Of a stretch of 59,794 nt of DNA, positions 25,294 through 59,794 are shown one piece after another. Source of the stretch: Octopus sinensis (lineage: Eukaryota). The translations under genes were made by a program, and so were the position numbers. Under the pieces are notes generated by a model. The model worked only from the letters and a program-made list of their open reading frames with translations. It was not told the DNA's origin and ran no database searches. Within the stretch, counting starts at the first letter, position 1, and the number at the start of each line of letters is the position of its first letter. The stretch covers positions 1 through 59,794 of the forward strand of contig NW_021833849.1 of NCBI RefSeq assembly GCF_006345805.1, written 5' to 3'.

Positions 25294-25617
25294 TTACGAG
25301 TCAGAGAGGTGAGAGTCATTCATCGAGGTGAAGTATGCGGATTCTGCCGTTTTCAGCATTAATTTGCTTACTCCATCTAATTTTTGAGAGCGGTCGAGTT
25401 CACTTTTAGTATTCTCGTTTGTGAGAGCAGTCGAGTTTATTTCAGATATTCTCATTCTAAAAATCATCTCTGGCTCATCGTTGAGAGGATGTTGGTATTG
25501 TCTCGGCGGAGGTTTGCACATTTTAAGTGCTCTACTGATTATTGTTATTGTTGTTGCTGCTTCTGCTGCTGCTGCTGCTGCTGATGATGATGATGATATA
25601 CAAGGTAATTCGGTAAA
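25294..25617 (-). CDS. Possible terminal exon or ORF of unknown function (FTELPCI-S5-A6...MCKPPPRQYQHPLNDEPEM...DSHLSDS*)
   Basis: Open for 108 codons after an atattttcAG acceptor; mirrored at 59673-59794 with an in-frame difference of one Ala; no recognisable domain. Confidence 0.25.
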   Translation of the reverse strand, partial: FTELPCISSSSSAAAAAAEAATTITIISRALKMCKPPPRQYQHPLNDEPEMIFRMRISEINSTALTNENTKSELDRSQKLDGVSKLMLKTAESAYFTSMNDSHLSDS

Positions 25618-25959
25618 CTGAAAATATCATTTCAGTCACCTATTCGATTGATTTATTTACAGAGTAATTCAGTTAACTGAAAGTACCTTTTCAGTTATCC
25701 ATTCGGATGTTTAATTTAAAGAGTTTACAGGTTTATCCGTGATCCATCCTTGCCTCATTCGTTACTGTTGTGGAAGGATTCCGACAACTCCCATATGATT
25801 AAAAGTGAATTGTCACAACATTTGCTATGAATAAAGAACTGTCGAGTTATCAGCAGTTCGCTGTGAGCCGTGTAACCTCGTATAACAGGAAGCCTCGTGC
25901 GTTCGTGTAAATACTTCGTTAAATTATTTATCAAACATACAAGGATAAAAAGTTACTTA

Positions 25960-27010
25960 TAAAGGAAATATACTTACACCATACCTCACGTTTTTGACAG
26001 TATCCGCGGAAGGAAGAGACTTGTGGATGACATGAATTACATATTATGAAGCACAGAAACAAAACGCTGATGAATCTAAGACTTACAGGAAATTCGAAAT
26101 TATGTCCTGTAACGCTCGAGTGCACATTAGGATACATGATGAAGATCATACCATAATTCAGCACATTGGTGAAGATCCTCATTGTTCATGTGCTTCAAAA
26201 TCCATGCATCATATTCAGGTGGGGTTATTCAGTGTCCCGCAGTTGTTTTCATTACCCCCACCCAAAAATAAACTTACAGCCGCCTTTTTTATAAGCTAAA
26301 TGAATTACTCCAAAGACTGAGCCCTGAAGATTTTATGAGGGATTTTGAAAAAGCTCTTATTAATAGCATTGTATCTGTTTCCTACTACTTCCATCTCATG
26401 CTGTCTTTTTCATCTATCACAAAATATATACAGAAAACATGTGAATTTGGCTTGAAGGACAGATACCATCATGATAATGAGTTTAGCATTAAAATCAGAG
26501 GTTTTTAAGCATTGCTAATTCTTCGTCTCGATGATGAGATTGACGGAGTCGAAAATCTTGTAGATGACGATGATCTTCCGCAAGAACTTGTGACCTACTT
26601 TAGATTATCGTACCTATGATAAGTGTGAAGTAAAGGAATGAGACCACGAAGGACTTCTCCCTAGTTTCCCATTGTCGAACATCTTGTAGATGACGATGAT
26701 CCTCCTGCTAGAACTTGTGACCTACTTTGGATTATCGTACCTAAGAAGAGTGCAAAGTAAAGGAATCAGACTACAAAGGACTTCTCCCTAGTTTCCTATT
26801 GGTAGTTGGAATGTCCGCTTTAAAACAGAATCGGATATGCCTCGCACTAATAACCTTTTAGAGGGATTTCACAACGCCCTACAAATTTCCTTAATTTGTT
26901 CACATCCGAATATATGGAGATAATTACTGCATTGAGAAGGGAAGAACACTTGGCACAGCTGAGAAAGGTTGAATTTGATGGAGGTGGGATCTGCGAGACC
27001 AAACAAAAAT
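25960..27010 (+). mobile_element. Mutator/MULE transposase pseudogene with an N-terminal FLYWCH-like finger
   Basis: SIRGRKRLVDD...CNARVH...H; DFEKALINS...SCCLFHLSQ; DDDDLPQELV.YF; FPIGSWNV...PRTNNLLEGFHN...HPNIWRLI; frameshifted. Confidence 0.85.
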
Positions 27011-27929
27011 AAAAGAAAGGATATAAGCAAACGGATAAGTATTGAGCGACATAGTCCCGAAAATAAGATGGATTTTATATGAGCAATGGCCCCTAACCTT
27101 CATTTTTATTGAAACTTTTAGTAATAATTTTAGGTTTTACTCGACTTTTTATTTCATCCTTATTCAACGTTTTATTTTTTGTAATATCGGGAGTGAGATT
27201 GACTTGTAGTCAAATTACCGGAGTCAAAATACCGTGTGTGAAGTTATCAGGATTCAAATTACCTGTCGCCAATTCAGTCGATGTCTGAGGGATACGGGTT
27301 CGAGTGCAACTTTTTTCCATCTCATAAGGGTACCCAGTCTTTCTCTGCTATCTCTACAGCTTTACTGGGTTTGAAATGTCCTTCCTTATCTGCAAGGTAT
27401 CGCGTTTAAAATGGTTAAGTATGTTATCATTTATTTATGCAGAAGAGATAACATTACATGACAGGGAGTAGCTTTAATGGAAGAAAAACATTCGCAAAAT
27501 ATATAAATTCCTACGTCTCTTATTAAGAGAGACTAATGAGTGTTTCTCTCGATGCCACAGGGAATGTTAACCATCTTCTAAATTTATGTCCCAGATTCCA
27601 GATACAGTTTTGAAGAATCACATGAATACTTTGATCACCTATAAACAAAAAGAAACTTGTTACTATGGAATTGCTTCAACGTAATCATTGGAGACCTCCG
27701 CTTCAATGAAGAAGCAGGCTGAAGCAAGAACTGACCAAATGCTATAGAAAGATAAAGCTTTAGCAAACCAAAAGAGAAGCGAGCATAATTACTACGTTTG
27801 TGTGCAATAAGGGGTCTCATGATAACAAACACTGTGTCCGGAAAAGACTGTCTGGAAGCTAAATCAATATATATATTATTCTTCAATTCATTACTTTGAA
27901 CAACGATCGTCAAGTTTGCTTTGGCAATT

Positions 27930-28720
27930 CTAAAGATATTTTGGTGTCACGAATTGTGTCACCAAAACAGATAAAATAACCTTTAAAGTTCAATACCTGA
28001 ACTTCAAATTTTACTATCCAACATATACAAAACGCAATATCCCATACAACCTAGCCGAGAAAATGTGTACGTTTGTGGAGGATGTGAGAATCAGAGACAA
28101 AAGCCTAACAAAACTAAAAGAATCTCTACCCAAGCAAAAATATCCGTCTCTACTCATAGAAAATGGTGTACAGCTTGATATAGAAATACCCATACAAGAA
28201 CTTAGGGCCACCCGAGGATGAGGAAAACGAGAACAGATCATACCAGTTATAGTGGCACACAACCCATGTTACCGGAATACCTTAAGCATTGCAAATCAAA
28301 CTTGCCGATCATTATTCAAAGTAATGAATTAGAAGATATAATCACGGATGGAGTAATGGCTCTAAGTAAAAGACAGTCGAAAGACTTGAAACATTTAATA
28401 AAGGCAAAGTGTGATCTTAGCAACAATACGAATCATTCATTGTGACTAAGTACAATGATAATCGATGTGGGACATGTCAGTTCATACATATCGGTCAATA
28501 TTGGAACAAAAAATAAACGGAAGAATATTTGCAAATTTAAATATGAACAGCAAAAGCAGAAATTTAATTTACTGCATCAAATGCCAGAATTCTGAAGAGA
28601 TATACGTTGGCCAGACTTGGATGCACTAGTGGAACGGTCACGTGTGCTCCAACAGTAAATAAGAGATCCTGATGTCGGCCAGATGATCCGTTAAACCGAC
28701 CACTGGCAACTTGTGGTCTA
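27930..28720 (+). mobile_element. Penelope-like element remnant (RT thumb, linker and GIY-YIG)
   Basis: QYLNFKFYYPTYTKRNIPYNLA; CGTC; SKSRNLIYCIKCQNSEEIYVGQT...R....Q*IRDP. Confidence 0.85.
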
Positions 28721-28809
28721 CACAACTGAAGACAAGGCGAGAGAAACGTAGAGAGAAAAAATTTATTGATAAACTGAAACCATTTTTAAATGGGCAAAAC
28801 TAATAATAG

Positions 28810-28868
28810 TTATAGTAACGGTGATGACTGGAATGATGATGATGATGATGATGATTATGATGATGATG

Positions 28869-28917
<49 letters not shown>

Positions 28918-29009
28918 TGATGATAATAATAATAATAATGATGATGATGATGATAATAATAATAATAATAATGATGATGATAATAATAATAATAACAATG
29001 ATAATAATG

Positions 29010-29040
<31 letters not shown>

Positions 29041-29098
29041 TAATAATAATAATAATAATAATATAATAATAATAAGAGTAATAATAATAATGATGATG

Positions 29099-29165
<67 letters not shown>

Positions 29166-29209
29166 TAATAATGATAATAATAATAATGATGATAATAATA
29201 ATAACAATG

Positions 29210-29243
<34 letters not shown>

Positions 29244-29482
29244 TAATAATAATAATGATAATAATAATAATAATAATGATAATAATAATGATAATATTAA
29301 TAATAATAATAATAATGATAATAATGATAATATAATAATAATAATAATAATTAATAATAATAATAATAATAATGATAATAATAAATAATGATAATAATAA
29401 TGATAATAATAATAATAATAATGATAATAATAATATAATAATAATAATAATAAGATAATATTAATAATAATAATAATATATG

Positions 29483-29525
<43 letters not shown>

Positions 29526-29559
29526 TAATAATAATGATAATAATATAATAATGATGATG

Positions 29560-29594
<35 letters not shown>

Positions 29595-29637
29595 TAATGA
29601 TAATATAATAATAATAAATAATAATAATAATATAATA

Positions 29638-29671
<34 letters not shown>
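28810..29671. repeat. ~860 bp (AAT/GAT)n microsatellite
   Basis: Directly visible; mirrored at 55631-56470. Confidence 0.97.
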
Positions 29672-31500
<1,829 letters not shown>

Positions 31501-31960
31501 AACTTCTACTAAAGGCAGAAGGCCTGAAATTTGGCGAAGGATGATTAGTCAATTACAATGACCCCAGTGTTTCACTGATAGTTAATTTATTGACCCTGAA
31601 AGGATGAAAGTCAAAGTCTACCTTGGTGGAATTTGAACTCAGAACATAAAGGTGAATAAAATGTTGCTATGCATTTTGTCCAATGTGCTAATGTTTCTGC
31701 CAACTTGCCGCCATAATGATAATGATGATGATGACGATGAAGATAAAAATAATTTCAAATTGTTGGCACTTGTGCCAACAATTTTGGTAAAGTGGAATAT
31801 ATAGTTCATTAATCAACCCCAGTACTCAACTGGTACCTATTTTACTGACCCTAACAGGATGAAAGGCAAAGTCAGCTTCATGGTAATCAGAATTTGGAAT
31901 GTAAAGTCAGAAGAAATGCTACTAAGCGTTTTGCCTGATGTGCTCACATTTCCGTCACCT
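31501..31960 (-). mobile_element. Two decayed SINE copies in tandem (31501-31712 and ~31750-31960)
   Basis: Both carry ttgaccctgaaaggatgaaag(t/g)caaagtc...gaatttg; a third fragment is at ~32605-32700. Confidence 0.7.
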
Positions 31961-33871
31961 TAACAACAATAACAACAACAATACTAATAATAAAATGTGC
32001 TGTTTAGCCCTTGGTCAACCCTGACTGCGCAGGCCTCAGATCAAAAGCATTCTAGCTGTGACCATCCTGTCTTTTTCCTATTTGCAGTGACCATATAACC
32101 ATGTGAGTTCACATGTCCTTGTTTTAAGATACGAGGCAGATGTGGCTGCTACATCTAACAGACCTAACCACCACATACACGATCTCTCATTGGTTCATTA
32201 TTAGCTTGTGCAAATAAATAGACAGGAACAGTTTGACAGGACCCTGCTTAGATTTTCAGTAGACGCATCAGATAGCATTTTTATCTGATGTACTTACTAC
32301 TACCACAGATAACTGTGGTTGTTCAATAGGATTGAGTATTGGGTATATCTATTGATGAGGGGGTCTATTCATATCCATTCCCTGTCTTCAGTCATCATAT
32401 GTTGTCAGAATCATAAGGACGCCTTCCTCACACTCATATTTGGGTATTTTAAACATGATGTAGCTAACCCCTCTCTCTGTCAAACCACAGTGGAAATCTT
32501 TCAAGGAAAGAGAGAGAAGAGAGAGAGGAGAGAGAGAGAGAGAGAGAGAGAATGAGAGAGTGCAAAATATAATGATGTATTCCTTTCAGTACCTGATGTT
32601 GTATTGAAAGAATGAAAAAGCAAAGTTGACGTTGATGGGATTTGAACTCAGGGCACAGAATGCCAGAATGACTACTTCAATACATTCTAAGCAATCCGCT
32701 AAAAATCCTGTCGAATCCCCAAGTAACAACTGGCAGGTATTTAATGCATGGAACATGCTTGGATGGAGTTGAAAGGCAAGGGGAGGTAATCCCTGTTTTT
32801 CTTTACCAGTGAGTGTTGCTAATTAAACCATCACCCATGTTGCTAATTGCACTTTAATTAGCAGATCGTTCGCAGTCATTATCTCCTGTGTTAACATTAT
32901 TTTATTTACATTTGACAGCAGTTCATTATAAAAAATCTATTTGAAATGTCTCATCTTGTCAATCGGTTTCTACTATTTGGTTATTAATAACCAAATTTTG
33001 AATATGTTTTCATAATGATGCCTTTAATTGACTTATGTCTGCAAGTTTATTTGAAGTATGATAATTTTTTTTGTTTTTATTCCAGTTTGTGAATTTGTTT
33101 CATATTAAAATTTTGTATGAAGTCACTACGTTTTACCCCCTTAATACATTTTGTTTGATTTTTAAATTTTTAAATTTAAAGCAAGATAAAAAGAAAAGAA
33201 AAACAGTTTTCATTAGGAGCAGTGTTATATATTTTTTAATATAAAAATGAGAAATTTAAAAGCAAATATTTGAACAGCATTGTTAAAAACAACAACATTG
33301 TGTAATTCCTTCTGTCAAATATAATTCTTCAGAAAAGAACAAGCATTATCAATGTATTCTGTTTTTAATTTAATTATTTCTTCTCAATTCAATTTAGCTG
33401 TTTTCAAATTATTTCAGAGATTGCACTTGTGTAGATAATGCAACACTTAAGGGACATTGATAATTGAACAAGACAAGTTTACATATTTTCAGTTAATAAT
33501 CTCATTACTTAATTTCAACAGGAATAATCCTTTACAAGAGTCTTCCCCATGACCACCACCTCTCCTCCCGCTCATCCTTCCACACCTTCTCTTCAGGCTA
33601 AAAAATTATTCTCAATTTTCAGTTTTCCAGGAAGCAAACGAATGTATCTGCCAATAATTTCCCAGACATATTTTTGATATTGTTGAGCAAACAGACAACT
33701 GACTAAAATCATTATTATTATTATTATTATTATTATATAACATATTGAATTCTTCAGGCTGGAATTACCTATAAAGATATTTATATTGGAGTATTAGAGT
33801 GTATGGGGATGGGGGGAAGGAAGAATATTTTTAAATCCTTCATTTACTGATGAAGTAATTTTAATTACACA

Positions 33872-34410
33872 AGACCCGGCAGGACAAGTGAGACCATAAC
33901 CCGTGGCCTCTACACGGGATGTAGCCAGTCCACTTATGCATACCACTCCTTCTTGGGACACAAAACTCTACTTGTGAAGACCTGTTGAGGCAAGTGAGAA
34001 TCGTAATCGATCAGCATCAATGGAAATTGCAGCTGTGATACTAGTGCCGGTGGCACGTAAGAGAACCATCCGAACGTGGCTGTTGCCAGTGCCGCCACGA
34101 CTGGCCTCGTGCCGGTGGCACGTAAAAAGCACCATCCGTTCGTGGCCGTTTGCCAGACTCGCCTGGCCCCCGTGTCGGTGGCACGTAAAAAGCACCATCG
34201 AATCGTGGCCGTTTGCCAGACGGGTCTGGCACCTGTGCCGGTGGCACGTAAAAAGCACCCACTACACTCAAGGAGTGGTTGGCGTTAGGAAGGGCATCCA
34301 GCCGTAGAAACATTGCCAGATCAGACTGGGCCTTCTGGCTTCCCAGACCCCAGTTGAACCGTCCAACCCATGCCAGCATGGAAAGCGGACGCTAAACGAT
34401 GATGATGATT
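33872..34410 (+). mobile_element. Short retroelement (SINE or LINE tail) with four ~63 bp internal repeats and a (GAT)n tail; left arm only
   Basis: gtg(c/t)cggtggcacgtaa at 34044, 34109, 34172 and 34235; ends ccagcatggaaagcggacgctaaacgatgatgatg; absent from the right arm and all tandem units. Confidence 0.8.
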
Positions 34411-34599
34411 ATGAATTTAATGAGTTAAAATAAACAAAAGACACTGGAACGCCATCCTTCTCCACCGCCATTAATACAAAGATAATGAAGAACATAATCC
34501 AACCAACATCTATTTCACAAAGACACAAATATTAAAGTAAACAATATTCTAGAAAAAAACTTTCTTATTTTTTTTTTTTTTGTTTTCAAAGAATTTCAT

Positions 34600-35900
34600 T
34601 CTCGTTGCTTTCTTTGAAATGTACAGTCCAGTTTTCCTTATTCTTGTTCCAAACAATTCGTCAATTTCTCGACTCTCTCTCTCTCCAACAGTACTGCTCT
34701 TTCCTCGCTACCAAACACCTCTTCATCCAGTCTTACTCTTATTAAATTCTTCACCTTTGCAATCTTTTCCTCAATTCACACAATCTTATCGTAAATTATC
34801 ATCATTCAGTCGGCTGCTTTCTTTGCCTCACATATTCCATTCTCCTCCTTACTTCCCCTTTCCACTCCTCATATTTCTCCTCTTTGTCTATTTCTTCTCT
34901 CCTTCTTGTTGTTGGCTCTGGGGTTCGATTTTCACTCGTCTCTTTTCTCTACTAATTTTTTCTCTTGTACTTTTACCGCTTTTTTCTTCTTTTTCAGTTT
35001 TGGGCGGTGACTCCGCACTTGTTCTTTTTCTGCCCCCTATTTCCTCCTCCTTTTCCTCCACCACTATTACTTCCTCCACCTCTGCTTAGTTCTCCGTTCT
35101 TTCCTCGTCTCTGGGGACACCTTGCCTTCATGTGTCCTCTTGTACCGCAATTATAACATACTGGAGGCTTCCCTTCCACCACAATTCTCAGCCGGGTGTC
35201 ATCGGGGAGCACCAACTCCTCTGCTATCTTGTACAAGTCAAGCAGGGTTATATGGACCAAGATTTCCAGTCTAAATCCCCATCAGTTTATCTCAGCCAAT
35301 TTTGCCACCTTGATAATCTTGGTCTCCTCCTCACAGTTGTACAGGATAGTTTCCAACAGCCATTCCTCATCTATTTTGGGTGGCACTCTCCCTATCTGTA
35401 CTCTTGCCACTCTTTTACCACATTAGGTTGGCAAAAGTGCCCACCTGGCTGATCTCAACAGCATCGTGGAGTACTTTTTCGTTTCCTCCTCATTCACGAA
35501 GTGAACCTCCACCGTGCCGTACTTCCTTCCACGAGTATAAAACGTCGTTACTCCCTTCACTTCGCTCAGGCATTCATCTGCTACTTCCACTCTTTTTGTT
35601 TCTACATCCAGCATTCTGTATATTATTATTTTCCTCTCTGCTCTTTCCATCGCTTCTCCCGGGGGTATCAGCCTAAGGCAGTCTCCCTCTTTTTTAAATA
35701 ATCCTTGTACTTTCCGAAATCCTTCTGCTCCAACACAAATTCTTTCAATCGCAGAATGTCAGCTGGCAGGCTTTTGCCCGCCACCGCGGTGTAACTGCCT
35801 ATTCGTTTTTCCTCCATTTCACCCAAAAATGGGGAAGAAAAAGAAACAGCATTAACAACAATTAACAAATCTCAAAAAATAACATTATCCAAAGTACAAC
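34600..35900 (-). mobile_element. L1/Tx1-like ORF1 remnant with a CCHC zinc knuckle
   Basis: ATG at 35817; SYTAVAGK; YGTVEVHF; LRIVVEGKPPVCYNCGTRGHMKARCP at 35117-35185; K/E-rich tail; frameshifts; no ORF2 visible. Confidence 0.75.
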
Positions 35901-36059
35901 AATGCACAACTCGCATCGACAATGCTATTCAAATTTTCTAACACCCACAAAAGAAAAACAACATTATTTCATTACTTAAACATGCAATTGGTTGTCGTTA
36001 ATAGAAATTCAAACGGGCCGGTTTCAAATTCCCGTAAGCCTATACAATTTTATTACAAC

Positions 36060-36400
36060 CATTTTTATTTCTATACCCTTTCAAAGAGTAGATGAAAACC
36101 TATGGTTGCAGAAAGGGATCACCTCAGCAAATTTAAAGTTTTGGGCCCAAAAAACTTAAGGATGGAAGGGATTCCTTAACACATAGCTTATACTTATTTA
36201 TATTTACTCTGAAGTAAGGGTCCCTCAAAATAACAGACCATTCCAAAGAATATCTTTTCTCATTACTCTTTAAACCATGTATATAAGAGGCAAGTGTAGT
36301 AGAATTAAAGTGGGCCCTATGCCTACTGTACTGCCTTTATAAAATTTATCTAAATTACCCTCCTCTTTAGCAACGCATGACTAATCTAAAAGTTAAACCC
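36060..36400 (-). mobile_element. Penelope-like GIY-YIG C-terminal remnant
   Basis: KFYKGST...NSTTLASYIHGLKSNEKRYSLEWSVI...KLCVKE...TLN resembles the STTLS.YIW.LK...Y.IKW.I...C.LC..EK..LLN pattern. Confidence 0.6.
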
Positions 36401-36599
36401 AGCAGACTAGTTCAAATTTTCTGACACCCAGCCACAAAAAAAACGAATTATTTTATTGCTAATCATGCAGGTGGTCGTTGTTAATAGAAATCCAAACCGT
36501 ATAAACATACACATATACACATATATTTGTATATACATATATATATATACACATACACACACACCTATATTTGTATATAGCCGAGCCGAGCCCTGGCCG

Positions 36600-36760
36600 C
36601 CATAGCGCTCATTGTGGGGTCGTAGCCTTGGACAGTGAGCCTCAACAGGTCTTTGCAAGCAGAGTTTAGTGTCCAATGAAGGAAAGGTACGCATAAGTAG
36701 GCTGGCATAGGCCATGAGGTTATGGTCTCACTTGGCTTGTAACCCATAAAAGCCCTCAAT
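36600..36760 (-). mobile_element. Fragment of the same repeat family as 33885-33990
   Basis: Reverse complement reads caagtgagaccataacc...cttatgcgtacc...aagacctgttgaggc. Confidence 0.65.
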
Positions 36761-37299
36761 GACTCAACAGAGCTCAGAAACACGTCCTCCTCCGCCACGT
36801 CACCTTCAACACCATGGAGTTATTTAAACTAATACAAAACCCTGAATCAATTAGTCATGGTTCTAACAACGGAATGCTCACACCGAACCTGATCATGTCA
36901 AGACTACATCACTCACTTCTGACATTTCCTTTTATTTTTTAACTGGTTCCAATCAGACTGTGGCCATACTGGAGCACTGATTTCAGAGTTTTATTTGATT
37001 TTATTCAGACTTGTACTTCTGTACTTTTCACTGGTGGTGTTGGTGATGGCAGTGGCGGAAGTTTGACCAAAACCCCTCAGATACCAAAAGATAAGTTCAT
37101 TAAAAAGACAAACAAATAAAAAAAAACAGTAAAGAAAAATAAAAGTTGAAAAGCTTTTTTCTTTCTTTCGAAATGGTTTCTCATTCGATGGTTGATGCGA
37201 TGAAAGGAGACTGAATGAATTTTGTTAACTTTTAGTCATGGTTTGGGCCAAAGTTTATTAGTTTGCATCTCTTAATGCTAATTAATTATTAGAAGCCAT

Positions 37300-37460
37300 G
37301 AGTGCAGGTGTGGCTTTGTGGTTGGGAAGTTGGCTTCCCACTCATATGATCCTGGGTTCAGTCCCACTGTGTGGCACCTTGGGCAAGTGTCTTCTACTAC
37401 ATTCCCAGACCAAGCACAGCCTTGGGAGTGGATTTGGTAGACAGAAACTGAAAGAAGGTG
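37300..37460 (+). mobile_element. tRNA-derived SINE 5' part
   Basis: gcaggtgtggctttgtggtt (A box), ctgggttcagtccc (B box), ccttgggcaagtgtcttctac, gaaactgaaagaag. Confidence 0.75.
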
Positions 37461-37956
37461 GCGTGTTGGCAGAAATTTCCAGAGATATCTCTGGAAATTT
37501 AAATCCACACTATGGATTGATTCATCTTCTCTTCGAAACTAATAAGCTTTTAAAAATCTGTGATAAGACTGTGCATCATCATTAAGGAACTTTGGAAAAC
37601 TGTTTACAACCTATATCTGCCTCTAATGGAACTATCTCCAATATTTCATGAGTATAACCTCACCCACTAAGATGTCTAGAGAACACAAATGTATTTTAGC
37701 TGATGAGTACGGGACACTTTTATCTGCTGCAATTTTTGCAACTTGTAATAAAGCCTGTCTTTGTATGAAACAATTGTACTAAAAACCAATCCATTCCTGT
37801 TGCTTCTTTCTCGTTTATAATCACCCCACATTACTGTATGGATAACACCATATAGTTTTTCTGGTGCATCTAAGTTAAGTACCACATTCAAGTAAATTCA
37901 TTGGAAGTTACTTGAATCTTAATTGCTTTGATTGTATATATATATATATATATGTA

Positions 37957-39267: not shown

Positions 39268-39270
<3 letters not shown>
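37957..39270 (+). mobile_element. 5'-truncated CR1-group LINE, unit 1 (163 bp internal deletion, 1 bp frameshift)
   Basis: [20 protein letters not shown]; junction ctccagaag|aaattctc; 3' tail ttctaagtta x2. Confidence 0.92.
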
Positions 39271-39312
<42 letters not shown>

Positions 39313-39433
39313 CTATATATACACATGTATGTATATATGTATGTATATATGTATGTATATATGTGTGTATGTATATACCTATATATATCTATATATATAT
39401 GCATGCATATAACTATGTATATATATGTATATA

Positions 39434-39494
<61 letters not shown>

Positions 39495-45729: not shown

Positions 45730-45795
<66 letters not shown>

Positions 45796-46316: not shown

Positions 46317-46402
<86 letters not shown>

Positions 46403-46410
46403 ATATATGT

Positions 46411-47888: not shown

Positions 47889-47890
<2 letters not shown>
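46411..47890 (+). mobile_element. 5'-truncated CR1-group LINE, unit 3
   Basis: Same motifs; VADD variant; TGG>TAG at 47402-47404. Confidence 0.95.
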
Positions 47891-47933
<43 letters not shown>

Positions 47934-48041
47934 CATGTATGTATATATGTATGTATATATGTGTGTATATATGTATCTATATATATCTATATATATGCAT
48001 GCATATAACTATGTATATATGTATGTATATATATATGTATA

Positions 48042-48091
<50 letters not shown>

Positions 48092-48238
48092 GTATTATAT
48101 ATGTATGTATATATGTATATTTATGTATATATGTATGTATGTATATATATATATCTATATATATATACATGCATATAACTATATATATATATACATACAT
48201 ACATGTATATATTTATATATATATACATGTATGTATGC

Positions 48239-48277
<39 letters not shown>

Positions 48278-49160
48278 CATGTAATATATATTGTATGTAT
48301 GAGTATAAGCGTATGTATGAGTATGTATGAGAAGGAGCAATTTTTTTTCAAGAATATTGTTTACTTTAATATTTGTGTCTTTGTGAAATAGATGTTGGTT
48401 GGATTATGTTCTTCATTATCTTTGTATTAATGGCGGGGGAGAAGGATGGCGTTCCAGTGTCTTTTGTTTATTTGAACTCATAAAATTATGTGTAATTAAA
48501 ATTACTTCATCAGTAAATGAAGGATTTAAAAATATCTTCCTTCCCCCCATCCGCATCCACTCTAATACTCCAATATAAATATGTTTAATAGGTAATTCCA
48601 GCCTGAAGAATTCAACGTTATATAATAATGATAAGTCATTAAAGGCATCATTATGAAAACATATTCAAAATTTGGTTATTAATAACCAAATAGTAGAAAC
48701 CGATTGACAAGATGAGACATTTCAAATAGATCTTTTATAATGAACTGCTGTCAAATGTAAATAAAGGAAATGTTAACACAGGAGATAATGACTGCGAACG
48801 ATCTGCTAATTAAAGTGCAATTAGCAACATGGGTGATGGTTTAATTAGCAACACTCACTGGTAAAGAAAACAGGGATTTCCTCCCCTTGCCTTTCAACTC
48901 CATCCAAGCATGTTCCATGCATTAAATACCTGCCAGTTGTTACTTGGGGATTCGACACGATTGTTAGCGGATTGCTTAGAATGTATTGAAGTAGTCATTC
49001 TGGCATTCTGTGCCCTGAGTTCAAATCCCATCAACGTCAACTTTGCTTTTTCATTCTTTCAATACAACATCAGGTACTGAAAGGAATACATCATTATATT
49101 TTGCACTCTCTCATTCTCTCCCTCTTTCTCTCTCTCTCTCCCACCCTCTCTCTCTCTCAC

Positions 49161-49192
<32 letters not shown>

Positions 49193-50216
49193 TTTTCTTT
49201 GAAAGATTTCCACTGTGGTTTAACAGAGAGAGGGGTTAGCTACATCATGTTTAAAATACCCAAATATGAGTGTGAGGAAGGCGTCCTTATGATTCTGACA
49301 ACATATGATGACTGAAGACAGGGAATGGATATGAATAGACCCCCTCATCAATAGATATACCCAATACTCAATCCTATTGAACAACCACAGTTATCTGTGG
49401 TAGTAGTAAGTACATCAGATAAAAATGCTATCTGCTGAGTCTACTGAAAATCTAAGCAGGGTCCTGTCAAACTGTTCCTGTCTATTTATTTGCACAAGCT
49501 AATAATGAACCAATGAGAGATCGTGTATGTGGTGGTTCGGTCTGTTAGATGTAGCAGCCACATCTGCCTCGTATCTTAAAACAAGGACATGTGAACTCAC
49601 ATGGTTATATGGTCACTGCAAATAGGAAAAAGACAGGATGGTCACAGCTAGAATGCTTTTGATCTGAGGCCTGCACAGTCAGGGTTGACCAAGGGCTAAA
49701 CAGCACATTTTATTATTAGTATTGTTGTTGTTATTGTTGTTAAGGTGACGGAAATGTGAGCACATCAGGCAAAACGCTTAGTTGCATTTCTTCTGACTTT
49801 ACATTCCAAATTCTGATTACCATGAAGCTGACTTTGCCTTTCATCCTGTTAGGTTCAGTAAAATAGGTACCAGTTGAGTACTGGGGTTGATTAATGGACT
49901 ATATATTCCACTTTACCAAAATTGATGGCACAAGTGCCAACGATTTGAGATTATTTTTATCTTCATCATCATCATCATCATTATCATTATGGCGGCAAGT
50001 TGGCAGAAACATTAGCACATTGGACAAAATGCATAGCAGCATTTTATTCACCTTTATGTTCTGAGTTCAAATTCCACCAAGGTAGACTTTGACTTTCATC
50101 CTTTCAGGGTCAATAAATTAACTATCAGTGAAACACTGGGGTCATTGTAATTGACTAATCATCCTTCGCCAAATTTCAGGCCTTCTGCCTTTAGTAGAAG
50201 TTATCATTATTATTAC

Positions 50217-50271
<55 letters not shown>

Positions 50272-50316
50272 TATTATTATTACTACTATTAATTATTATT
50301 ATTATTATTATCATCA

Positions 50317-50348
<32 letters not shown>

Positions 50349-50349
<1 letters not shown>

Positions 50350-53300
50350 TATGTTTGACTTTTGCTTTATATTTGTACAAGTTGGCTCCAAGTCTCACCC
50401 AGAGACCTCAAGAGACAACAGGGTTGGAAGTTCATGTTGTTGTTATGCCTAGTGTGCCATATATTTGGGGGGTGGGGATGTTGTTGTACTAATGAATGTC
50501 TAAAAAAAAAGTTTTTTTTTTTTTTTTTTTTAAACCGAAAATTATGTTTGTTTTAAACCTTGAGATTACATAGAGAGTATTTTGCGTAGGATATGAGCAG
50601 TTCCCATGAGCACTATCTTTTGAACTTCTGCCATTTTTGGGTTTCCTGGTATCTGAGTTAGGTAGCTATCAGCCCCTTTTGCTATCATTCCCAGGGCACC
50701 TATGACAACAGGTATTGTTTTAGTCTTCAGCTCCACATTTTGCTGATTTCTATTTCAAGATCTTTATATTTGCTCAGTTTTTGGTAGGTCTTGACAGATA
50801 CGTTTATATCGATTGGGACAGTCATATCAATGAGGAGGCATGTTCTTTGTTTGAAGTTTTTCAATATGATGTCTGGCCTATTTGCATCTATCTTCCTGTC
50901 AGTTTGAATGGTGAAGTTCCAGAGGAGTGAGATGTGGTCATTTTCAAGCACTGGGGGTGGTTTGTGTTCCCACCAGTTTTTTTCATGGGGCAAATCCAGG
51001 TTTTTACAGATTACCCAGTGAATATATTGTGCAGCTCTATCGTGCCTGTTGAGATACTCTGTAGGCGCTAGAAGACTGCACTTGGAGACCACATGGTCAA
51101 TGGTTTCATTTTGTTGCTTGCATACACGACACGTTGGACTGCTTCTGATCTTTAATATGTTGGCCTGGTAGTTTCTTGTTGGGAGGCATTGATCTTGAGC
51201 TGCTATGATAAACCCCTCCTGTTTCAGATTTTAAGCCAGAGGCCATTAGCCATTGATGGGTCAGGGCTTTGTCGATATCTGCATTATTCGCTCTCTTTGG
51301 GTATTTGCCATAGAGAGGTTTTTCTTGCCATTTATTATTCAGAATATCTAAGGCCGCAGTTTTGGCACGGGTTTTCATGCGCCTAGCTTTTTTGTGCTTG
51401 TTTTTGTATATCTATCTCTAATTCCGAAATTGGTTGTATTCGGAATTCACTTAGATATTCCTTTGCCTGTTTTGTGACTGAGTATGATGCTTTCTTGTTT
51501 TCATGTTTTGAGACAAGTTTTAGCATCCAGTCCTCAGAGTTTTTCAGGTAGGTGTCTAGGCCAATTGTAGCAATCTTCATTGTTATTGCCAGTTGCAAAA
51601 GACCACGGCCTCCCTCTTTTCTTGGCAGATAGAGTCGTTCTGTATCTGCCTTAGGGTGGTGCATTCTATGCATTGTCAACAGTTTCCTTATTTTTCTGTC
51701 GAGCTGACATATTTCAGTAATTGACCAGTTACAATATTGAAACTGTAAGTCACGACTGTATAGCTAATGCATTGATTGCTTCGATCCTGTTTCTTGCATT
51801 CAGCTCTGTCTTGAGTATTGCTCTCACTCTTCGATAGCATTCTCTCCTGATCCTTTCCTTCATCTCTGAATGCCTTATTCCGTTCCCTTCAATTATCCCT
51901 AGGTACTTGTAGCTCTCCGCTGGGTCTAGTTCTTTTATGACATTCTGTTGGTCAAGGTTAACGTTAGATGTTTCTGTCATTTTTCCTTTGATAAAGGTAG
52001 CCTTTGCACATTTATCGAGGCCGAATTGCATTCTGATGTCGTCACTGAATTGTTTGACTATCGCTAGTAAGCCCTTGAGTTGTTGATCATTTTTTGCAAA
52101 AAGCTTTAAATCATCCATGTAAACGAGATGATTTATATTTTTATCAAACATTTTATACCCGTACTGCGCGTCATTGAGCAGCTTTGAGAGAGGTATTAAG
52201 GATAAACAAAAGAGGAGTGGTGACAGTGAGTCACCCTGGAAAATGCCACACGAAATTTTTACATCACCAGCATTTAGGGATTCACTGTCACTGTTCAGAG
52301 TTAGTGTGGTTCTCCATGATCTCATACTTACAGTCAAGAAGTTTCGCAGAGTTGGTGCTATCTTATACATTTCAAGGCATTTCCTAATCCAGCTATGTGG
52401 TAGGCTATCAAAAGCCTTTTTATAGTCTATCCAGGCTATTGATAAGTTTTTGTGTCGTTTGTGACAATCTTCTAAGATCATCTTATTGATGAGTAGTTGG
52501 TCTTTACAGCCGTAGGATCCACGTTTACATCCTTTCTGTTCATTAGGGAATATGCTGCTGTCTGTTAAAAAACTATAGGTATATTCCGTCAGGACAGATG
52601 TTAGTGTTTTGTACATAGTTGTTAAGCAGGTTATGGGTCTATAGTTTTTTGGTTCATTTGTTTCTTCACTTTTTGGAAGCAGGAATGTTAACCATTAACT
52701 AGCCAAGGAGGCATCCTACTAGGGTGTTGCAAAACATCATTGTACAGTTCTGTTAGCAGTTCATGGCTCTCTGGGAAGGCATTCAGCCAGAAGTTAGGAA
52801 TTTTATCCTTTCCTGGAGACTTCCATTTGCTTGACCTCCTGAGAGCAGATCTTATATCTTCTACCTTGACACCCTCCCACTTTTGCTCTTCTAAGGGGTC
52901 CATTTCTGTAGATATTCTGTCAATCCAGGGGGCCTTTTCGTTGGTGTTTTTTCTTCTGCCCAGATTTTATTCCAAAATCTCTGCACTTCTTCTTTTGATG
53001 GTACAGACCCTGCAGTAAACGCTTTTTTCCTATCTTCCTGTAAAAATTCTTGGTGTTATTTTTGAACATGTTGTTGTCCTTGAAAAATCTAACACGCTTT
53101 TCATACCTCGCTATGCGGGCAGCTTTGGCAGATACCTTTTGTTTGATGGTTTCTATGGTGGCATCAATATCAAGTATAGTTTTCATATTGTATTTTTTCA
53201 GTAATTTTTGGGTTTTTGTAGGTTTGGTAATCTTGTGAGCCTTAAGGTTTTTCAAATATTCAATGTCAGATCTAAATATTTTAATTTGTTGTTGCAGACG

Positions 53301-53930
53301 CTCTTGCCAAGAAGGCTTTTTGTGGGACTGTTGCCGTTTTCTAATCTTTACACCACATAGGATCGGTTGATTTTCGCGGATGCATAGTATAGGTGGTTGA
53401 GGTTTGTGATATCAACATCATTAACTGAAATTATATCCTTAAGTGCAAGCCGGATTTTACCAATTATTTTCATGTTTTGGTTAGAGTTGCGGATTTTAGG
53501 AAGTGTATCACGCTCATCCATGCTGGTTTCTTTAATTTTCAGCCATTCAATCATGATTTGATTTTTTAGCTCATAGTGTGTTCTGTTGGGTCATATTTGT
53601 GTGACTTTCTTTATCTATTTGATGCTCATCTGTCTTAGTGTTTATGATTGGTTCAGGGCGTATTTCACTTTGCCTATCACTTATACTAACTCTTTCAATC
53701 CTCTCTTCGTTTTTATCCGCCCTGGGCTGGTCTATAATCATTTCCTCTGTATTATCTTCTCTAGCTGCAGCTTCGTTCATTTTATCCGATATTGCTTGTC
53801 TAACCTGATCAATCTCTACTTCAGTCAGTAATTTCTTTTTTATAATGTTTCTTCTAACATTGGCAAGCTTGTTACTGTCTATGTAGGGTCTTACCTCAGG
53901 GTGTTTCTGTCTCCAGTTTAAGTATGCTTG
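50349..53930 (-). mobile_element. Near-full-length R4/Dong-like RLE retrotransposon (family 2) inserted in (TAA)n; right arm only
   Basis: N-terminal AYLNWRQKHP..DSNKLANVRRNIIKK; KSPGKD, NYRPITCL, EQKGC, DYKKAFDS, GIFQGDSLSPLLF, YMDDLKL, YKYLG; CCHC finger, RHD, RPDII..LIDMTVP; stop at 50566-50568; ~220 bp 3' UTR; several frameshifts. Confidence 0.95.
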
Positions 53931-53963
53931 TATTATTATTATTATTATTATTATTATTTTTCA

Positions 53964-54021
<58 letters not shown>

Positions 54022-54068
54022 CATCATTATTATTATTATTATCATTATTATTATTATTATTATTATTA

Positions 54069-55630
54069 CTTTTTTTTCCTTCTTTCAAATTTGCTTCCAT
54101 TTCTTGCCGAGTGTCTTCCCGACTCCTACGGCAAAGAAACTCATAGTATACATTGGTAGGCCATTAAACCAAACTCAGTAGTTCGTTCATTTTTTTTTTT
54201 TTAAAGTTAAATTAAAATACATGAGCAGCAACAGTTCTCACATCGACAATGCTCTTCTCAATACGTGTGATGTACAGTTAAGACAATCTTTTGCACTTCT
54301 TGCAGGGATGGTAAGCCAGGGATCATTCTCATATAATTTTCGGTTCCCTTCTTGATCATTCCTAGTGCTCCTACGATCACTGGTATTGTAACCGCCTTGA
54401 GATGCCACATTTTCTCAATTTCAATGAGTAGGTCTTTATATTTTCTGAGCTTGTCAAAACTTTCGCCGAGATATTATGATCACAGGGGATGCTCATGTCG
54501 ATCATAAGCAAACTTTATTGTTTTGGTCTTTCAAAACAATATCTGGTTTATTGGCCTTGATGGTTCGGTCTGTATGTACTGGAAAGTCGCACAGAATGGT
54601 TACATTTTCTCCTTCAGTTACAGCCTCAGGGTGGTGATTATACCACTTGTCGGCAGTTTTGATATTGTAATGCCTACTCATTAGCCAGTGGAGATATTGG
54701 CCAACTCTGTCATGTCTTAATTTATACTCCACTGGTGCTAAGACTTTACATCCAGAGATTAGGTGGTCCACTGTTTCAATCATGTCGTTGCAGAATCGGC
54801 ATTTTGGGTCTGCTCCATTTTTCATCACATTGGCCTGGTAGTTCCGGGTTAATAGGCTTTGATCTTGAGCAGCCAGGATGAAACCTTCGCTCTCTGCTTT
54901 TAGCCCTGAGCTCCGTAGCCACTGATGGGTTTGCTTCTGGTCAACATCAGCTTGTTTGCTGCGGGCCACATATTTGCCGTGCAGAGGTTCTCCTTCCACC
55001 TATCAGCCAATTGCTCGTGCGCTTTTTTCGTTGCCATTATTTTTACCTTCTTTGCAACAATAGCTGCCGTACTTCCCTCGGGTTGTTCAGTTTGGGTATC
55101 CTGCACGAGATCAATAGCAAATTTTGCGTTCCTTTATGATAGAATGAAGCTTCTTTCGTCTCTCGTGATTTTCCACGAGCTTTAGCATCCAGTCATTCGT
55201 TATTTCGAGATATTTAGCCAGTCCAGTTGTGGTTGTTTTGTAAGCTAGTTCAAATTGGATCAGGCCTCGACCTCCTTAGGCTCTGGGAAGGTAAAGGCGA
55301 TCTCCGTCTGCCTTGGGTGGTGCATCCTATTACATCTCAGCAGCTTGCGTATTTTCCTATCTATATTCTTTACTTCACTCATATTCCAGTTCAATACATT
55401 GTAGATATAAATAACAACTGGAATTGCTAAGGAATTTATAGCTAACACCTTGTTACGTGCATTTAGTTCAGATTTCAGGACTGCACGAACTCTCCTATAA
55501 CATTCCTTCCTGATTTTCTCTTTCATGCTTGCATGCTGAATACCAGAGCCTTCATTTATCCCTAAATATTTGTATGTTTGCTCTGGCTCAGGCTCTCTTA
55601 TGACTGTGTCAACATCTAACACGACTGAAT
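54069..55630 (-). mobile_element. Mirror copy of the R4/Dong-like family 1 fragment
   Basis: Same 5' truncation point and same TAA stop (55275-55277); single 3' terminus. Confidence 0.93.
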
Positions 55631-55662
55631 TATTATTATTATTATTATTATTATATTATCAA

Positions 55663-55746
<84 letters not shown>

Positions 55747-55793
55747 CATTATTATCATCATCATCATTATTATTATTATTATCATTATTATTA

Positions 55794-55831
<38 letters not shown>

Positions 55832-56050
55832 ATTATCTTTATTATTATTATTAATATTATCATTATTATTATTATTATTATTATTATCATTATTATTATC
55901 ATTATTATTATTATTATCATTATTATTATTATTATTATCTTATTATTATTATTATTATTATCATTATTATCATATTATTATTTTATTTAATCTTATCATT
56001 ATTATTAATCATTATTATTATTATTATTATCATTATTATTATTATTATTA

Positions 56051-56084
<34 letters not shown>

Positions 56085-56470
56085 CATTATTATTAATTAT
56101 TATTATTATTATTTTATCATTATTATCATTATTAATATTATTATTATTATTAATTATTTTATTAATTATTATTATTATCATATTATTATTATATCTTATT
56201 ATTATTATTATTATCATTATTATTATTACTCTTATTATTATTATATTATTATTATTATTATTATTATCATTATTATTATTATTATTATTTTCATTACCAT
56301 TATTATCATTGTTATTATTATTATTATCATCATCTATTATTATTATTATTATCATCATCATCATCATTATTATTATCATCATCATTATTATTATTATTAT
56401 TTATTATTATTATATATTATTATTATCATTCATCATCATAATCATCATCATCATCATCATCATTCCAGTC
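55631..56470. repeat. (ATT/ATC)n microsatellite, mirror of 28810-29671
   Basis: Directly visible. Confidence 0.97.
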
Positions 56471-56575
56471 ATCACCGTTACTATAACTATTATTAGTTTT
56501 GCCCATTTAAAAATGGTTTCAGTTTATCAATAAATTTTTTCTCTAACGTTTCTCTCGCCTTGTCTTCAGTTGTGT

Positions 56576-57360
56576 AGACCACAAGTTGCCAGTGGTCGGT
56601 TTAACGGATCATCTGGCCGACATCAGGATCTCTTATTTACTGTTGGAGCACACGTGACCGTTCCACTAGTGCATTCCAAGTCTGGCCAACGTATATCTCT
56701 TCAGAATTCTGGCATTTGATGCAGTAAATTAAATTTCTGCTTTTGCTGTTCATATTTAAATTTGCAAATATTCTTCCGTTTATTTTTTGTTCCAATATTG
56801 ACCGATATGTATGAACTGACATGTCCCACATCGATTATCATTGTACTTAGTCACAATGAATGATTCGTATTGTTGCTAAGATCACACTTTGCCTTTATTA
56901 AATGTTTCAAGTCTTTCGACTGTCTTTTACTTAGAGCCATTACTCCATCCGTGATTATATCTTCTAATTCATTACTTTGAATAATGATCGGCAAGTTTGA
57001 TTTGCAATGCTTAAGGTATTCCGGTAACATGGGTTGTGTGCCACTATAACTGGTATGATCTGTTCTCGTTTTCCTCATCCTCGGGTGGCCCTAAGTTCTT
57101 GTATGGGTATTTCTATATCAAGCTGTACACCATTTTCTATGAGTAGATATTTTTGCTTGGGTAGAGATTCTTTTAGTTTTGTTAGGCTTTTGTCTCTGAT
57201 TCTCACATCCTCCACAAACGTACACATTTTCTCGGCTAGGTTGTATGGGATATTGCGTTTTGTATATGTTGGATAGTAAAATTTGAAGTTCAGGTATTGA
57301 ACTTTAAAGGTTATTTTATCTGTTTTGGTGACACAATTCGTGACACCAAAATATCTTTAG
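56576..57360 (-). mobile_element. Penelope-like remnant, mirror copy
   Basis: SKSRNLIYCIKCQNSEEIYVGQTWNALVER. Confidence 0.85.
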
Positions 57361-58278
57361 AATTGCCAAAGCAAACTTGACGATCGTTGTTCAAAGTAAT
57401 GAATTGAAGAATAATATATATATTGATTTAGCTTCCAGACAGTCTTTTCCGGACACAGTGTTTGTTATCATGAGACCCCTTATTGCACACAAACGTAGTA
57501 ATTATGCTCGCTTCTCTTTTGGTTTGCTAAAGCTTTATCTTTCTATAGCATTTGGTCAGTTCTTGCTTCAGCCTGCTTCTTCATTGAAGCGGAGGTCTCC
57601 AATGATTACGTTGAAGCAATTCCATAGTAACAAGTTTCTTTTTGTTTATAGGTGATCAAAGTATTCATGTGATTCTTCAAAACTGTATCTGGAATCTGGG
57701 ACATAAATTTAGAAGATGGTTAACATTCCCTGTGGCATCGAGAGAAACACTCATTAGTCTCTCTTAATAAGAGACGTAGGAATTTATATATTTTGCGAAT
57801 GTTTTTCTTCCATTAAAGCTACTCCCTGTCATGTAATGTTATCTCTTCTGCATAAATAAATGATAACATACTTAACCATTTTAAACGCGATACCTTGCAG
57901 ATAAGGAAGGACATTTCAAACCCAGTAAAGCTGTAGAGATAGCAGAGAAAGACTGGGTACCCTTATGAGATGGAAAAAAGTTGCACTCGAACCCGTATCC
58001 CTCAGACATCGACTGAATTGGCGACAGGTAATTGAATCCTGATAACTTCACACACGGTATTTTGACTCCGGTAATTTGACTACAAGTCAATCTCACTCCC
58101 GATATTACAAAAAATAAAACGTTGAATAAGGATGAAATAAAAAGTCGAGTAAAACCTAAAATTATTACTAAAAGTTTCAATAAAAATGAAGGTTAGGGGC
58201 CATTGCTCATATAAAATCCATCTTATTTTCGGGACTATGTCGCTCAATACTTATCCGTTTGCTTATATCCTTTCTTTT

Positions 58279-59329
58279 ATTTTTGTTTGGTCTCACAGAT
58301 CCCACCTCCATCAAATTCAACCTGTCTCAGCTGTGCCAAGTGTTCTTCCCTTCTCAATGCAGTAATTATCTCCATATATTCGGATGTGAACAAATTAAGG
58401 AAATTTGTAGGGCGTTGTGAAATCCCTCTAAAAGGTTATTAGTGCGAGGCATATCCGATTCTGTTTTAAAGCGGACATTCCAACTACCAATAGGAAACTA
58501 GGGAGAAGTCCTTTGTAGTCTGATTCCTTTACTTTGCACTCTTCTTAGGTACGATAATCCAAAGTAGGTCACAAGTTCTAGCAGGAGGATCATCGTCATC
58601 TACAAGATGTTCGACAATGGGAAACTAGGGAGAAGTCCTTCGTGGTCTCATTCCTTTACTTCACACTTATCATAGGTACGATAATCTAAAGTAGGTCACA
58701 AGTTCTTGCGGAAGATCATCGTCATCTACAAGATTTTCGACTCCGTCAATCTCATCATCGAGACGAAGAATTAGCAATGCTTAAAAACCTCTGATTTTAA
58801 TGCTAAACTCATTATCATGATGGTATCTGTCCTTCAAGCCAAATTCACATGTTTTCTGTATATATTTTGTGATAGATGAAAAAGACAGCATGAGATGGAA
58901 GTAGTAGGAAACAGATACAATGCTATTAATAAGAGCTTTTTCAAAATCCCTCATAAAATCTTCAGGGCTCAGTCTTTGGAGTAATTCATTTAGCTTATAA
59001 AAAAGGCGGCTGTAAGTTTATTTTTGGGTGGGGGTAATGAAAACAACTGCGGGACACTGAATAACCCCACCTGAATATGATGCATGGATTTTGAAGCACA
59101 TGAACAATGAGGATCTTCACCAATGTGCTGAATTATGGTATGATCTTCATCATGTATCCTAATGTGCACTCGAGCGTTACAGGACATAATTTCGAATTTC
59201 CTGTAAGTCTTAGATTCATCAGCGTTTTGTTTCTGTGCTTCATAATATGTAATTCATGTCATCCACAAGTCTCTTCCTTCCGCGGATACTGTCAAAAACG
59301 TGAGGTATGGTGTAAGTATATTTCCTTTA
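58279..59329 (-). mobile_element. MULE transposase pseudogene, mirror copy
   Basis: Reverse complement of 25960-27010. Confidence 0.85.
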
Positions 59330-59794
59330 TAAGTAACTTTTATATCCTTGTATGTTTGATAAATAATTTAACGAAGTATTTACACGAACGCACGAGGCTT
59401 CCTGTTATACGAGGTTACACGGCTCACAGCGAACTGCTGATAACTCGACAGTTCTTTATTCATAGCAAATGTTGTGACAATTCACTTTTAATCATATGGG
59501 AGTTGTCGGAATCCTTCCACAACAGTAACGAATGAGGCAAGGATGGATCACGGATAAACCTGTAAACTCTTTAAATTAAACATCCGAATGGATAACTGAA
59601 AAGGTACTTTCAGTTAACTGAATTACTCTGTAAATAAATCAATCGAATAGGTGACTGAAATGATATTTTCAGTTTACCGAATTACCTTGTATATCATCAT
59701 CATCATCAGCAGCAGCAGCAGCAGAAGCAGCAACAACAATAACAATAATCAGTAGAGCACTTAAAATGTGCAAACCTCCGCCGAGACAATACCA

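Follow-up and report, generated by a model that had tools for sequence, protein, structure and literature searches.

An inverted segmental duplication with stepped arm identity and a tandem array in its spacer in Octopus sinensis

Is the long mirror-image structure in a contig of Octopus sinensis (NCBI RefSeq assembly GCF_006345805.1, contig NW_021833849.1) a genuine and ageing palindrome, or did part of it arise when the contig was assembled? The window, i.e., the whole stretch analysed, comprises 59,794 nucleotides (positions 1 to 59,794 of the forward strand), and a sequence-only reading had described 25495-34560 as mirrored by the right third of the window in a giant palindrome, either real and aged or joining two haplotypes. 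We find that the arms fall into two parts of unequal divergence. Three components are real genomic features whose history can be read, namely the inverted repeat of the inner ~5.8 kb, the spacer, and a tandem array within the spacer; the outer 3.3 kb of the two arms are nearly identical. We give about an even chance to a genuine aged inverted segmental duplication whose outer arms have been kept alike by arm-to-arm gene conversion. The mirror structure was traced in the assembled window sequence by ungapped self-comparison and gapped self-BLAST.

In the ungapped repeat search, 25.5-28.6 kb matched 56.7-59.7 kb in inverted orientation, with perfect runs of 1310, 888, and 473 nt, and gapped self-BLAST joined the arms into a single collinear inverted chain, in which 25493-34565 is the reverse complement of 59794-48336:

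25493-34565, plus strand: left arm, visible part, 9.07 kb; its partner reaches the window end, so the start is a visible limit
48336-59794, minus strand: right arm, 11.46 kb, reverse complement of the left arm
25493-31247 with 59794-54060, inverted: chain block 1, an alignment of 5.79 kb with 97.7% identity, gaps counted
31337-33036 with 50367-48631, inverted: chain block 2
33724-33871 with 48634-48489, inverted: chain block 3
34414-34565 with 48487-48336, inverted: chain block 4

Chance similarity cannot produce such a chain, which runs through anonymous DNA, a microsatellite array with interruptions common to both arms, a fragment of a long interspersed nuclear element (LINE), and its flank. 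The mirror structure is thus borne out, as are the arm lengths of at least 9 and 11.5 kb and the separation of ~13.8 kb given by the sequence-only reading (13.77 kb, 34566-48335). The match was also expected to continue beyond the window, and the alignment indeed reaches the final base (59794), so that the outer limit lies beyond view. There are no runs of N in the window. The inner boundary is clean at 34565 and 48336; however, it lies in low-complexity sequence that has diverged by ~2% and is too eroded for microhomology scoring. The arms have the size of those in large palindromes (at least ~8-10 kb around a spacer), but "giant" overstates the visible extent, and no gene was detected in them.

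The identity of the arms changes in a step, which lies at an imperfect microsatellite array:

25493-28800, plus strand: outer segment, left; near-identical, anonymous, non-coding; 3 substitutions in ~3300 bp (0.09%)
56495-59794, minus strand: outer segment, right; near-identical partner of 25493-28800
28801-29673, plus strand: imperfect (ATA)n/(GAT)n microsatellite array, left copy, ~870 bp, from a tandem-repeat call
55629-56494, minus strand: (ATA)n array, right copy, homologous to the left array
29674-31247: compared part of the LINE that we call LINE-A; 19 substitutions in 1574 bp (1.2%)
31503-33036, plus strand: anonymous inner left arm; 31503-31995 is present in two copies (8 substitutions in 493 bp, 1.6%) and the sequence from 31993 inward in four
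Four-copy segment: 30 substitutions in 1324 bp (2.3%)

The outer segment is ~99.9% identical between the arms, and the inner 5.8 kb are 97.7-98.8% identical by substitutions and interrupted by insertions. Divergence in the outer 3.3 kb is 25-fold below that of the inner part. The counts are 3 substitutions per 3300 bp outside the array and 57 per 3391 bp inside it (Fisher p=6e-14), and the difference holds against LINE-A alone (Fisher p=2e-7). Of the three outer substitutions, two are clean and one stands beside an indel; homopolymers and short repeats of the segment also account for seven small indel events. Homology between the two arrays extends over their full length, with interruption motifs in common and many small slips throughout, and they contain no internal point at which the two copies become identical. 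The step coincides with this array and not with the large insertion in the right arm. All reciprocal differences between the arms lie in the inner, diverged part (left coordinates above 28800). They had been taken as a sign of a real and aged structure, an argument that holds for the inner ~5.8 kb, where divergence is 1.2-2.3% with changes derived on both arms, but does not extend to the outer 3.3 kb, where none of the reciprocal differences lie and three substitutions were found.

The inner divergence is not perfectly flat, as LINE-A (1.2%) differs from the four-copy segment (2.3%) at p=0.03. Nine of the 19 LINE-A substitutions are concentrated in the 212 bp at 29788-29999, directly inside the (ATA)n array (~4% locally). 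We considered a smooth divergence gradient along the arms; the step at the array fits better, as these nine substitutions lie within 212 bp of it. The cluster itself could be a patch of ectopic conversion from another LINE copy or a product of error-prone repair beside the array.

The elements in the arms establish that both are copies of one locus:

29674-31502, plus strand: LINE-A, left copy, a 5'-truncated Dong/R4-like LINE with its body to 31363 and a (TAA)n tail at 31365-31502
53931-55628, minus strand: LINE-A, right copy, truncated at the same 5' point; (TAA)n tail at 53931-54068
50201-53930, minus strand: LINE-B, in the right arm only, with a body of ~3.56-3.58 kb (from ~50349/50368 to 53930) and a (TAA)n tail at 50201-50348

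Changes in LINE-A were polarised with an independent copy, L001, a sewage metagenome contig of 1983 bp (ENA ERZ22666216) that is 96% identical, extends 338 bp further at the 5' side, and holds a single copy of a 124-bp unit of the 3' untranslated region (UTR). The contig name suggests an origin in Bologna, Italy, and the contig is presumably animal DNA derived from food, which agrees, if weakly and circumstantially, with an edible cephalopod as the source. Because the two arms have the truncation point 29674/55628 in common and the metagenome copy is longer at its 5' end, the arms descend from a single insertion. The substitutions are derived on both arms (five on the left, nine on the right). 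Small indels are derived mostly in the right copy (seven events in 54069-55628 versus two in 29674-31247), through either real decay or a poorer consensus toward the window end. The left copy encodes the C-terminal part of the reverse transcriptase (RT) and a putative CCHC zinc-finger/endonuclease-like domain in a frame that is continuous across 462 codons (tblastn), whereas the right copy is frameshifted by derived indels of 1-2 bp. The 124-bp 3' UTR unit is duplicated in the left copy (31108-31363; Tandem Repeats Finder period 124, 2.1 copies) and single in the right; since the metagenome copy also has one unit, the duplication is derived on the left.

LINE-B is a related, RT-bearing LINE whose coding region is broken into at least five pieces. 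It lies head-to-tail inside the (TAA)n tail of the right LINE-A, on the same strand and with (TAA)n on either side; where the microsatellite gives way to the flank, its final units match the left arm exactly. LINE-B is a clean retrotransposition into a microsatellite. Dong elements target (TAA)n and carry (TAA)n tails, including a mollusc case (PMC3812793), and in Octopus vulgaris, Dong-R4 LINEs rank among the most abundant of the elements with recent activity (PMC13282606). Our elements resemble this clade in their (TAA)n 3' tails and in their fixed-orientation insertion inside (TAA)n/(ATA)n microsatellites, with LINE-A between (ATA)n and (TAA)n and LINE-B within (TAA)n. The order of domains also appears alike, with RT followed by a putative Cys/His zinc finger and a PD...D...K-like C-terminal domain. 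LINE-B has an RVT_1 match (2.5e-23), the zf-RVT match of LINE-A (21 bits) falls below the curated cut-off of 27.5 bits, and C..C..H..C and KPD...D...K motifs were seen by eye in components of LINE-A and LINE-B, whose N-termini, where an AP endonuclease would lie, are truncated. Both elements are truncated or broken in the window, and their likeness to Dong/R4 is one of motifs and tails. The site has received two successive microsatellite-targeted insertions of related Dong-like LINEs (28801-31502 and 50201-54068). LINE-A open reading frames (ORFs) match the RT C-terminal and zinc-finger regions of widespread animal LINEs, and homology searches with the LINE-A C-terminal ORF and the RT ORF of a third element in the spacer (LINE-C) recovered LINE relatives only, the metagenome copy being the best (96%).

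Inward of LINE-A, the arms continue for ~3 kb as anonymous sequence bearing short interspersed nuclear elements (SINEs), with a clean end at 34565. The left arm has two segments of its own here:

33037-33723, plus strand: left-only segment of 687 bp, missing from all three right-hand copies
33872-34413, plus strand: SINE-like retroposon of the left arm only, composed of 63-bp internal repeats, a conserved core, and a (GAT)n tail

The 687-bp segment may reflect either an insertion or a deletion and showed no clear target-site duplication. The SINE core sequence had no match in literature and supplement searches; the SINE sequences are probably of octopus type. Other SINE-like units lie at 9439-9953, where a 258-bp unit is present in two tandem copies of 97% identity, and at the window start, where 1-100 resembles a tRNA-like SINE head. 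ARAGORN and Rfam made no call on 9439-9953, 1-100, or 33872-34413. The arm-specific features of the sequence-only reading were all recovered, namely left-only 33037-33715 (here extended to 33723), the left-only retroelement at 33872-34410 (here to 34413), the left-only 124-bp duplication, and the right-only retrotransposon of 3.58 kb.

The ~13.8 kb between the arms had been described as a spacer. The length stands, but the spacer is not simple, as it contains a tandem array with two extra copies of the inner arm:

34566-37934, strand not assigned: single-copy spacer sequence, matched nowhere else in the window in either orientation; CT-rich and of low complexity at its start
37935-49710, plus strand: tandem array of 2.8 units, ~4.15-4.27 kb per unit
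37935-42203: array unit U1
42204-~46390: array unit U2
~46390-49710: array unit U3, which continues directly into the rest of the right arm

All units open within a (TA)n tract. Their contents are a fragment of the LINE-C RT, a (TA)n tract, and the innermost 1.34 kb of the arm repeated in inverted orientation (40056-41398, 44165-45548, and 48336-49710). The innermost arm segment is thus present in four copies instead of two, one in the left arm (L, 31993-34565) and three inverted in the array. An 806-bp segment, J, occurs between units only (41399-42203 and 45549-46367), which suggests that a duplication took up an insertion at its junction and that unequal exchange came afterwards. Compared with units 2 and 3, unit 1 carries an internal deletion (~42750-42912). 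In the four-copy alignment, 21 sites set L apart from U1-U3, and substitution identity is 97.5-97.8% between L and the array copies and 98.8-99.1% among the array copies. Since L is the outgroup to the three array copies, the inverted duplication came first and the tandem amplification across the boundary of spacer and arm came later. From this copy phylogeny, the ancestral spacer before amplification would have been ~5.5 kb (34566-40055). A kilobase-size unduplicated spacer, as in fold-back inverted duplications, is present both in the single-copy 34566-37934 and in the reconstructed ancestral state.

We propose the following history for the favoured aged inverted segmental duplication. The anatomy, the phylogeny of the copies, and the identity step are observations; the mechanism of duplication, the gene conversion, and the correctness of the assembly are inferred. 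A block comprising anonymous sequence, the (ATA)n array, the 5'-truncated Dong/R4-like LINE with its (TAA)n tail, and ~3 kb downstream would have been copied in inverted orientation, leaving a spacer of ~5.5 kb between the copies, and the inner arms would since have diverged by 1.2-2.3%. Later, a second Dong-like LINE may have inserted into the (TAA)n tail of the right arm, the SINE and the 687-bp segment may have become specific to the left arm, the 124-bp 3' UTR unit may have been duplicated on the left, and a 4.2-kb block across the boundary of spacer and right arm may have been amplified to 2.8 units that are now ~1% apart. The amplification would have widened the gap to 13.8 kb. Gene conversion could have persisted outside the (ATA)n array, where homology is long and unbroken, keeping the outer arms ~99.9% identical, and heterologies would have divided the inner arm into blocks of at most 1.6 kb. 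In primate X palindromes, rearrangements are likewise concentrated at the spacer and the inner arm, and the arms are more than 99% identical (PMC8327919). If the repeat calibration of O. vulgaris, in which a Jukes-Cantor divergence of 0.09 corresponds to ~25 million years (My; PMC13282606), applies to this locus, the inverted duplication would be roughly 3 My old, the tandem amplification 1.4 My, and the outer arms 0.1 My. Only 0.9-2.5 kb separate the outer segment from markers specific to the right arm (LINE-B and the derived variants of LINE-A). Ordinary long reads should therefore link the two, and read support for the outer adjacency is likely.

Several observations weigh against this history. 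The join was judged from the assembled sequence, and the right arm stops exactly at the window end, as would also be expected of a contig break or a fold there. Indels outnumber substitutions in the outer segment (7 vs 3), and the derived indels of LINE-A are biased toward the right copy (7 vs 2); this excess looks partly like consensus error near a sequence end. The sharp two-level step fits a younger second copying as well as gene conversion, and the differences between the arms are too few for a test of GC-biased conversion. There is no gene in the arms that suggests selection to keep a palindrome.

An assembly mis-join at the outer part is the most serious competitor, although we consider it rather unlikely. 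The assembler would have passed through the real inner repeat, leaving the right-hand copy into reverse-strand reads of the left flank, so that 56495-59794 would be the left locus (or its other haplotype) used twice and the true right flank would be missing. Three substitutions together with length changes in homopolymers and microrepeats are what consensus noise or allelic variation would leave between the outer arms, the excess of derived 1-2 bp indels in the right copy agrees with this, and the right arm continues up to base 59794. The switch would also coincide with an 870-bp low-complexity array beside a 1.6-kb segment of 98.8% identity, where noisy overlaps can be mis-paired. However, the arrays differ over their entire length and offer no switch point, and with right-arm markers at 0.9-2.5 kb any read longer than 5 kb would be expected to expose a wrong join. 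The window has neither gaps nor Ns, and the structure is not a zero-spacer palindrome of the missed-adapter type. The near-identical outer segments lie 27.7 kb apart, unlike the short or absent spacer of a fold-back artefact. A missed-adapter fold-back read is itself ruled out by the 13.8-kb spacer, and the sequence-only reading was right that no simple fold-back read chimera is involved, as the inner arms differ reciprocally at this distance. Chimeric inverted duplications in long-read assemblies resemble the locus in their near-identical inverted copy reaching the end of the sequence and, for the outer part, in differences dominated by small indels. The locus differs from them in the 13.8 kb between the arms, in the reciprocal transposon insertions of the inner arms and their substitutions in both directions, and in microsatellite arrays that are unlike throughout. 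Copies that are identical save for consensus noise describe the outer 3.3 kb but not the inner 5.8 kb.

A two-step origin is unlikely in our view. An older inverted repeat of ~5.8 kb, comprising the array, LINE-A, and the inner flank, would have existed first. After a break or a stalled fork beyond one copy, a fold-back or template switch would then have copied the flank outward, with the old repeat and its spacer becoming the loop. AT-rich microsatellites are plausible break sites. Such an event would leave two levels of divergence, and the observed values indeed drop sharply where the older repeat ends on its outer side, from 1.2% beside the array to 0.09% beyond it, and human germline fold-back inverted duplications have spacers of 0.77-70 kb and are in some cases primed by inverted LINEs or SINEs of 82-95% identity (PMC3907307). 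Against this, a fold-back of the classical type results in a dicentric chromosome or in a terminal deletion in need of healing, and a limited and fixed extension requires a second template switch, whose junction would lie beyond the window. This origin would also require the outer end of the older repeat to coincide exactly with that of the array, and the inner divergence is uneven. For the locus as a whole, the comparison with fold-back inverted duplications (Hermetz et al. 2014, PMC3907307) is instructive in that both have a kilobase-size unduplicated spacer between inverted copies, inverted repeat copies can act as the fold-back pairing site, and the ancestral ~5.5 kb lies inside the reported range. 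The reported events are de novo, megabase-scale, and located beside terminal deletions or translocations, whereas the present event is old, its junctions are eroded, and its distal end is beyond the window.

The suggestion that the arms are a head-to-head join between the two haplotypes of a single locus is very improbable. Presence and absence of transposons and ~2% divergence are possible between alleles in highly heterozygous marine invertebrates. However, alleles should mirror each other past the inner ends of the arms, and no inverted partner exists for 34566-37934; 21 diagnostic sites place the left copy outside the group formed by the three right-hand tandem copies; and a single allelic comparison does not predict a 25-fold lower divergence in the outer part. 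The spacer without mirror symmetry and the position of the left copy thus contradict this half of the earlier interpretation. Independent insertion of the same transposons in opposite orientation is hardly credible. The arms are largely transposon-derived and Dong-like LINEs do hit (TAA)n in a fixed orientation, but the truncation point of LINE-A and the interruption patterns of the arrays are the same in both arms, more than 6 kb of collinear non-LINE flank extend on both sides, and the outer arm has neither a coding remnant nor a homologue hinting at a young element. A young transposon inserted independently at both arrays was also considered for the outer identity alone and seems improbable, as no coding sequence, termini, or relatives support it.

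The outer segment 25493-28800 has no ORF of at least 110 amino acids and no similarity to LINE proteins, the longest outer-arm ORF has no homologue in a homology search, and a 53-mer spanning the two clean arm-specific substitutions had no match in a metagenome scan. By the ORF list and homology searches, the only ORFs in the arms are those of LINEs; Rfam and tRNA scans of the whole window returned nothing, and an exact look-up of ten window ORFs in a collection of 15 billion proteins found none on record. The arms are best read as transposon-filled non-coding DNA, a structural relic rather than a functional system. Mammalian sex-chromosome palindromes (human Y P1-P8 and those of the primate and mouse X) are alike in having inverted arms of at least 9 kb around a spacer and in the ~99.9% identity seen here in the visible outer arm, and primate X palindromes in the concentration of insertions, deletions, and rearrangements at the spacer and inner arm (PMC8327919). 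They differ in that no protein-coding gene family was found in the present arms and that the inner 5.8 kb are only 97.7-98.8% identical; moreover, the present host is an invertebrate, and the likeness is one of sequence anatomy. It is conceivable, though quite unlikely, that the visible 3.3 kb are the inner edge of a far larger cephalopod palindrome maintained by gene conversion, extending past 25493 and 59794. It would be an ampliconic palindrome in the style of sex chromosomes but outside vertebrates, decaying from the centre outward while insertions break up the inner arms. The locus adds an instance to a kind already known, the inverted segmental duplication or palindrome, and is not a new kind.

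Elsewhere in the window, a second segmental duplication, in direct orientation and of 97-99% identity, involves 1452-10386 and 18045-23122. It aligns in the following blocks:

1452-4795 with 18045-21375
7777-8777 with 21374-22370
8855-9427 with 22252-22822
10075-10386 with 22811-23122

This duplication holds a LINE with AP-endonuclease and RT domains, and its first copy has two extra segments, 4796-7776 (with a LINE C-terminal ORF) and 9428-10074. With direct duplication standing beside the tandem and inverted ones, the window is a cluster of direct, tandem, and inverted duplications. A (TTCT)n microsatellite of ~1 kb (268 units, 11213-12271) gives rise to spurious long ORFs; the 2 kb in which it is embedded are extremely asymmetric between strands (GC skew -0.61, AT skew -0.55).

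The general significance of the locus is modest, as neither a gene nor a new mechanism is involved, and it is an ordinary structural feature of a repeat-rich genome. Two of its details are useful, the step in identity and the tandem array that the "spacer" conceals. Should the outer part be an artefact, it marks a mis-join that would hide the true right flank in the assembly. If real, the locus documents the nested, orientation-specific insertion of Dong-like LINEs into (TAA)n tails and would provide an example of how an inverted duplication ages, with transposons, tandem amplification, and microsatellite drift eroding the centre while the outer homology stays near-identical. Inverted repeats this large can also drive inversions and further rearrangements at the locus.

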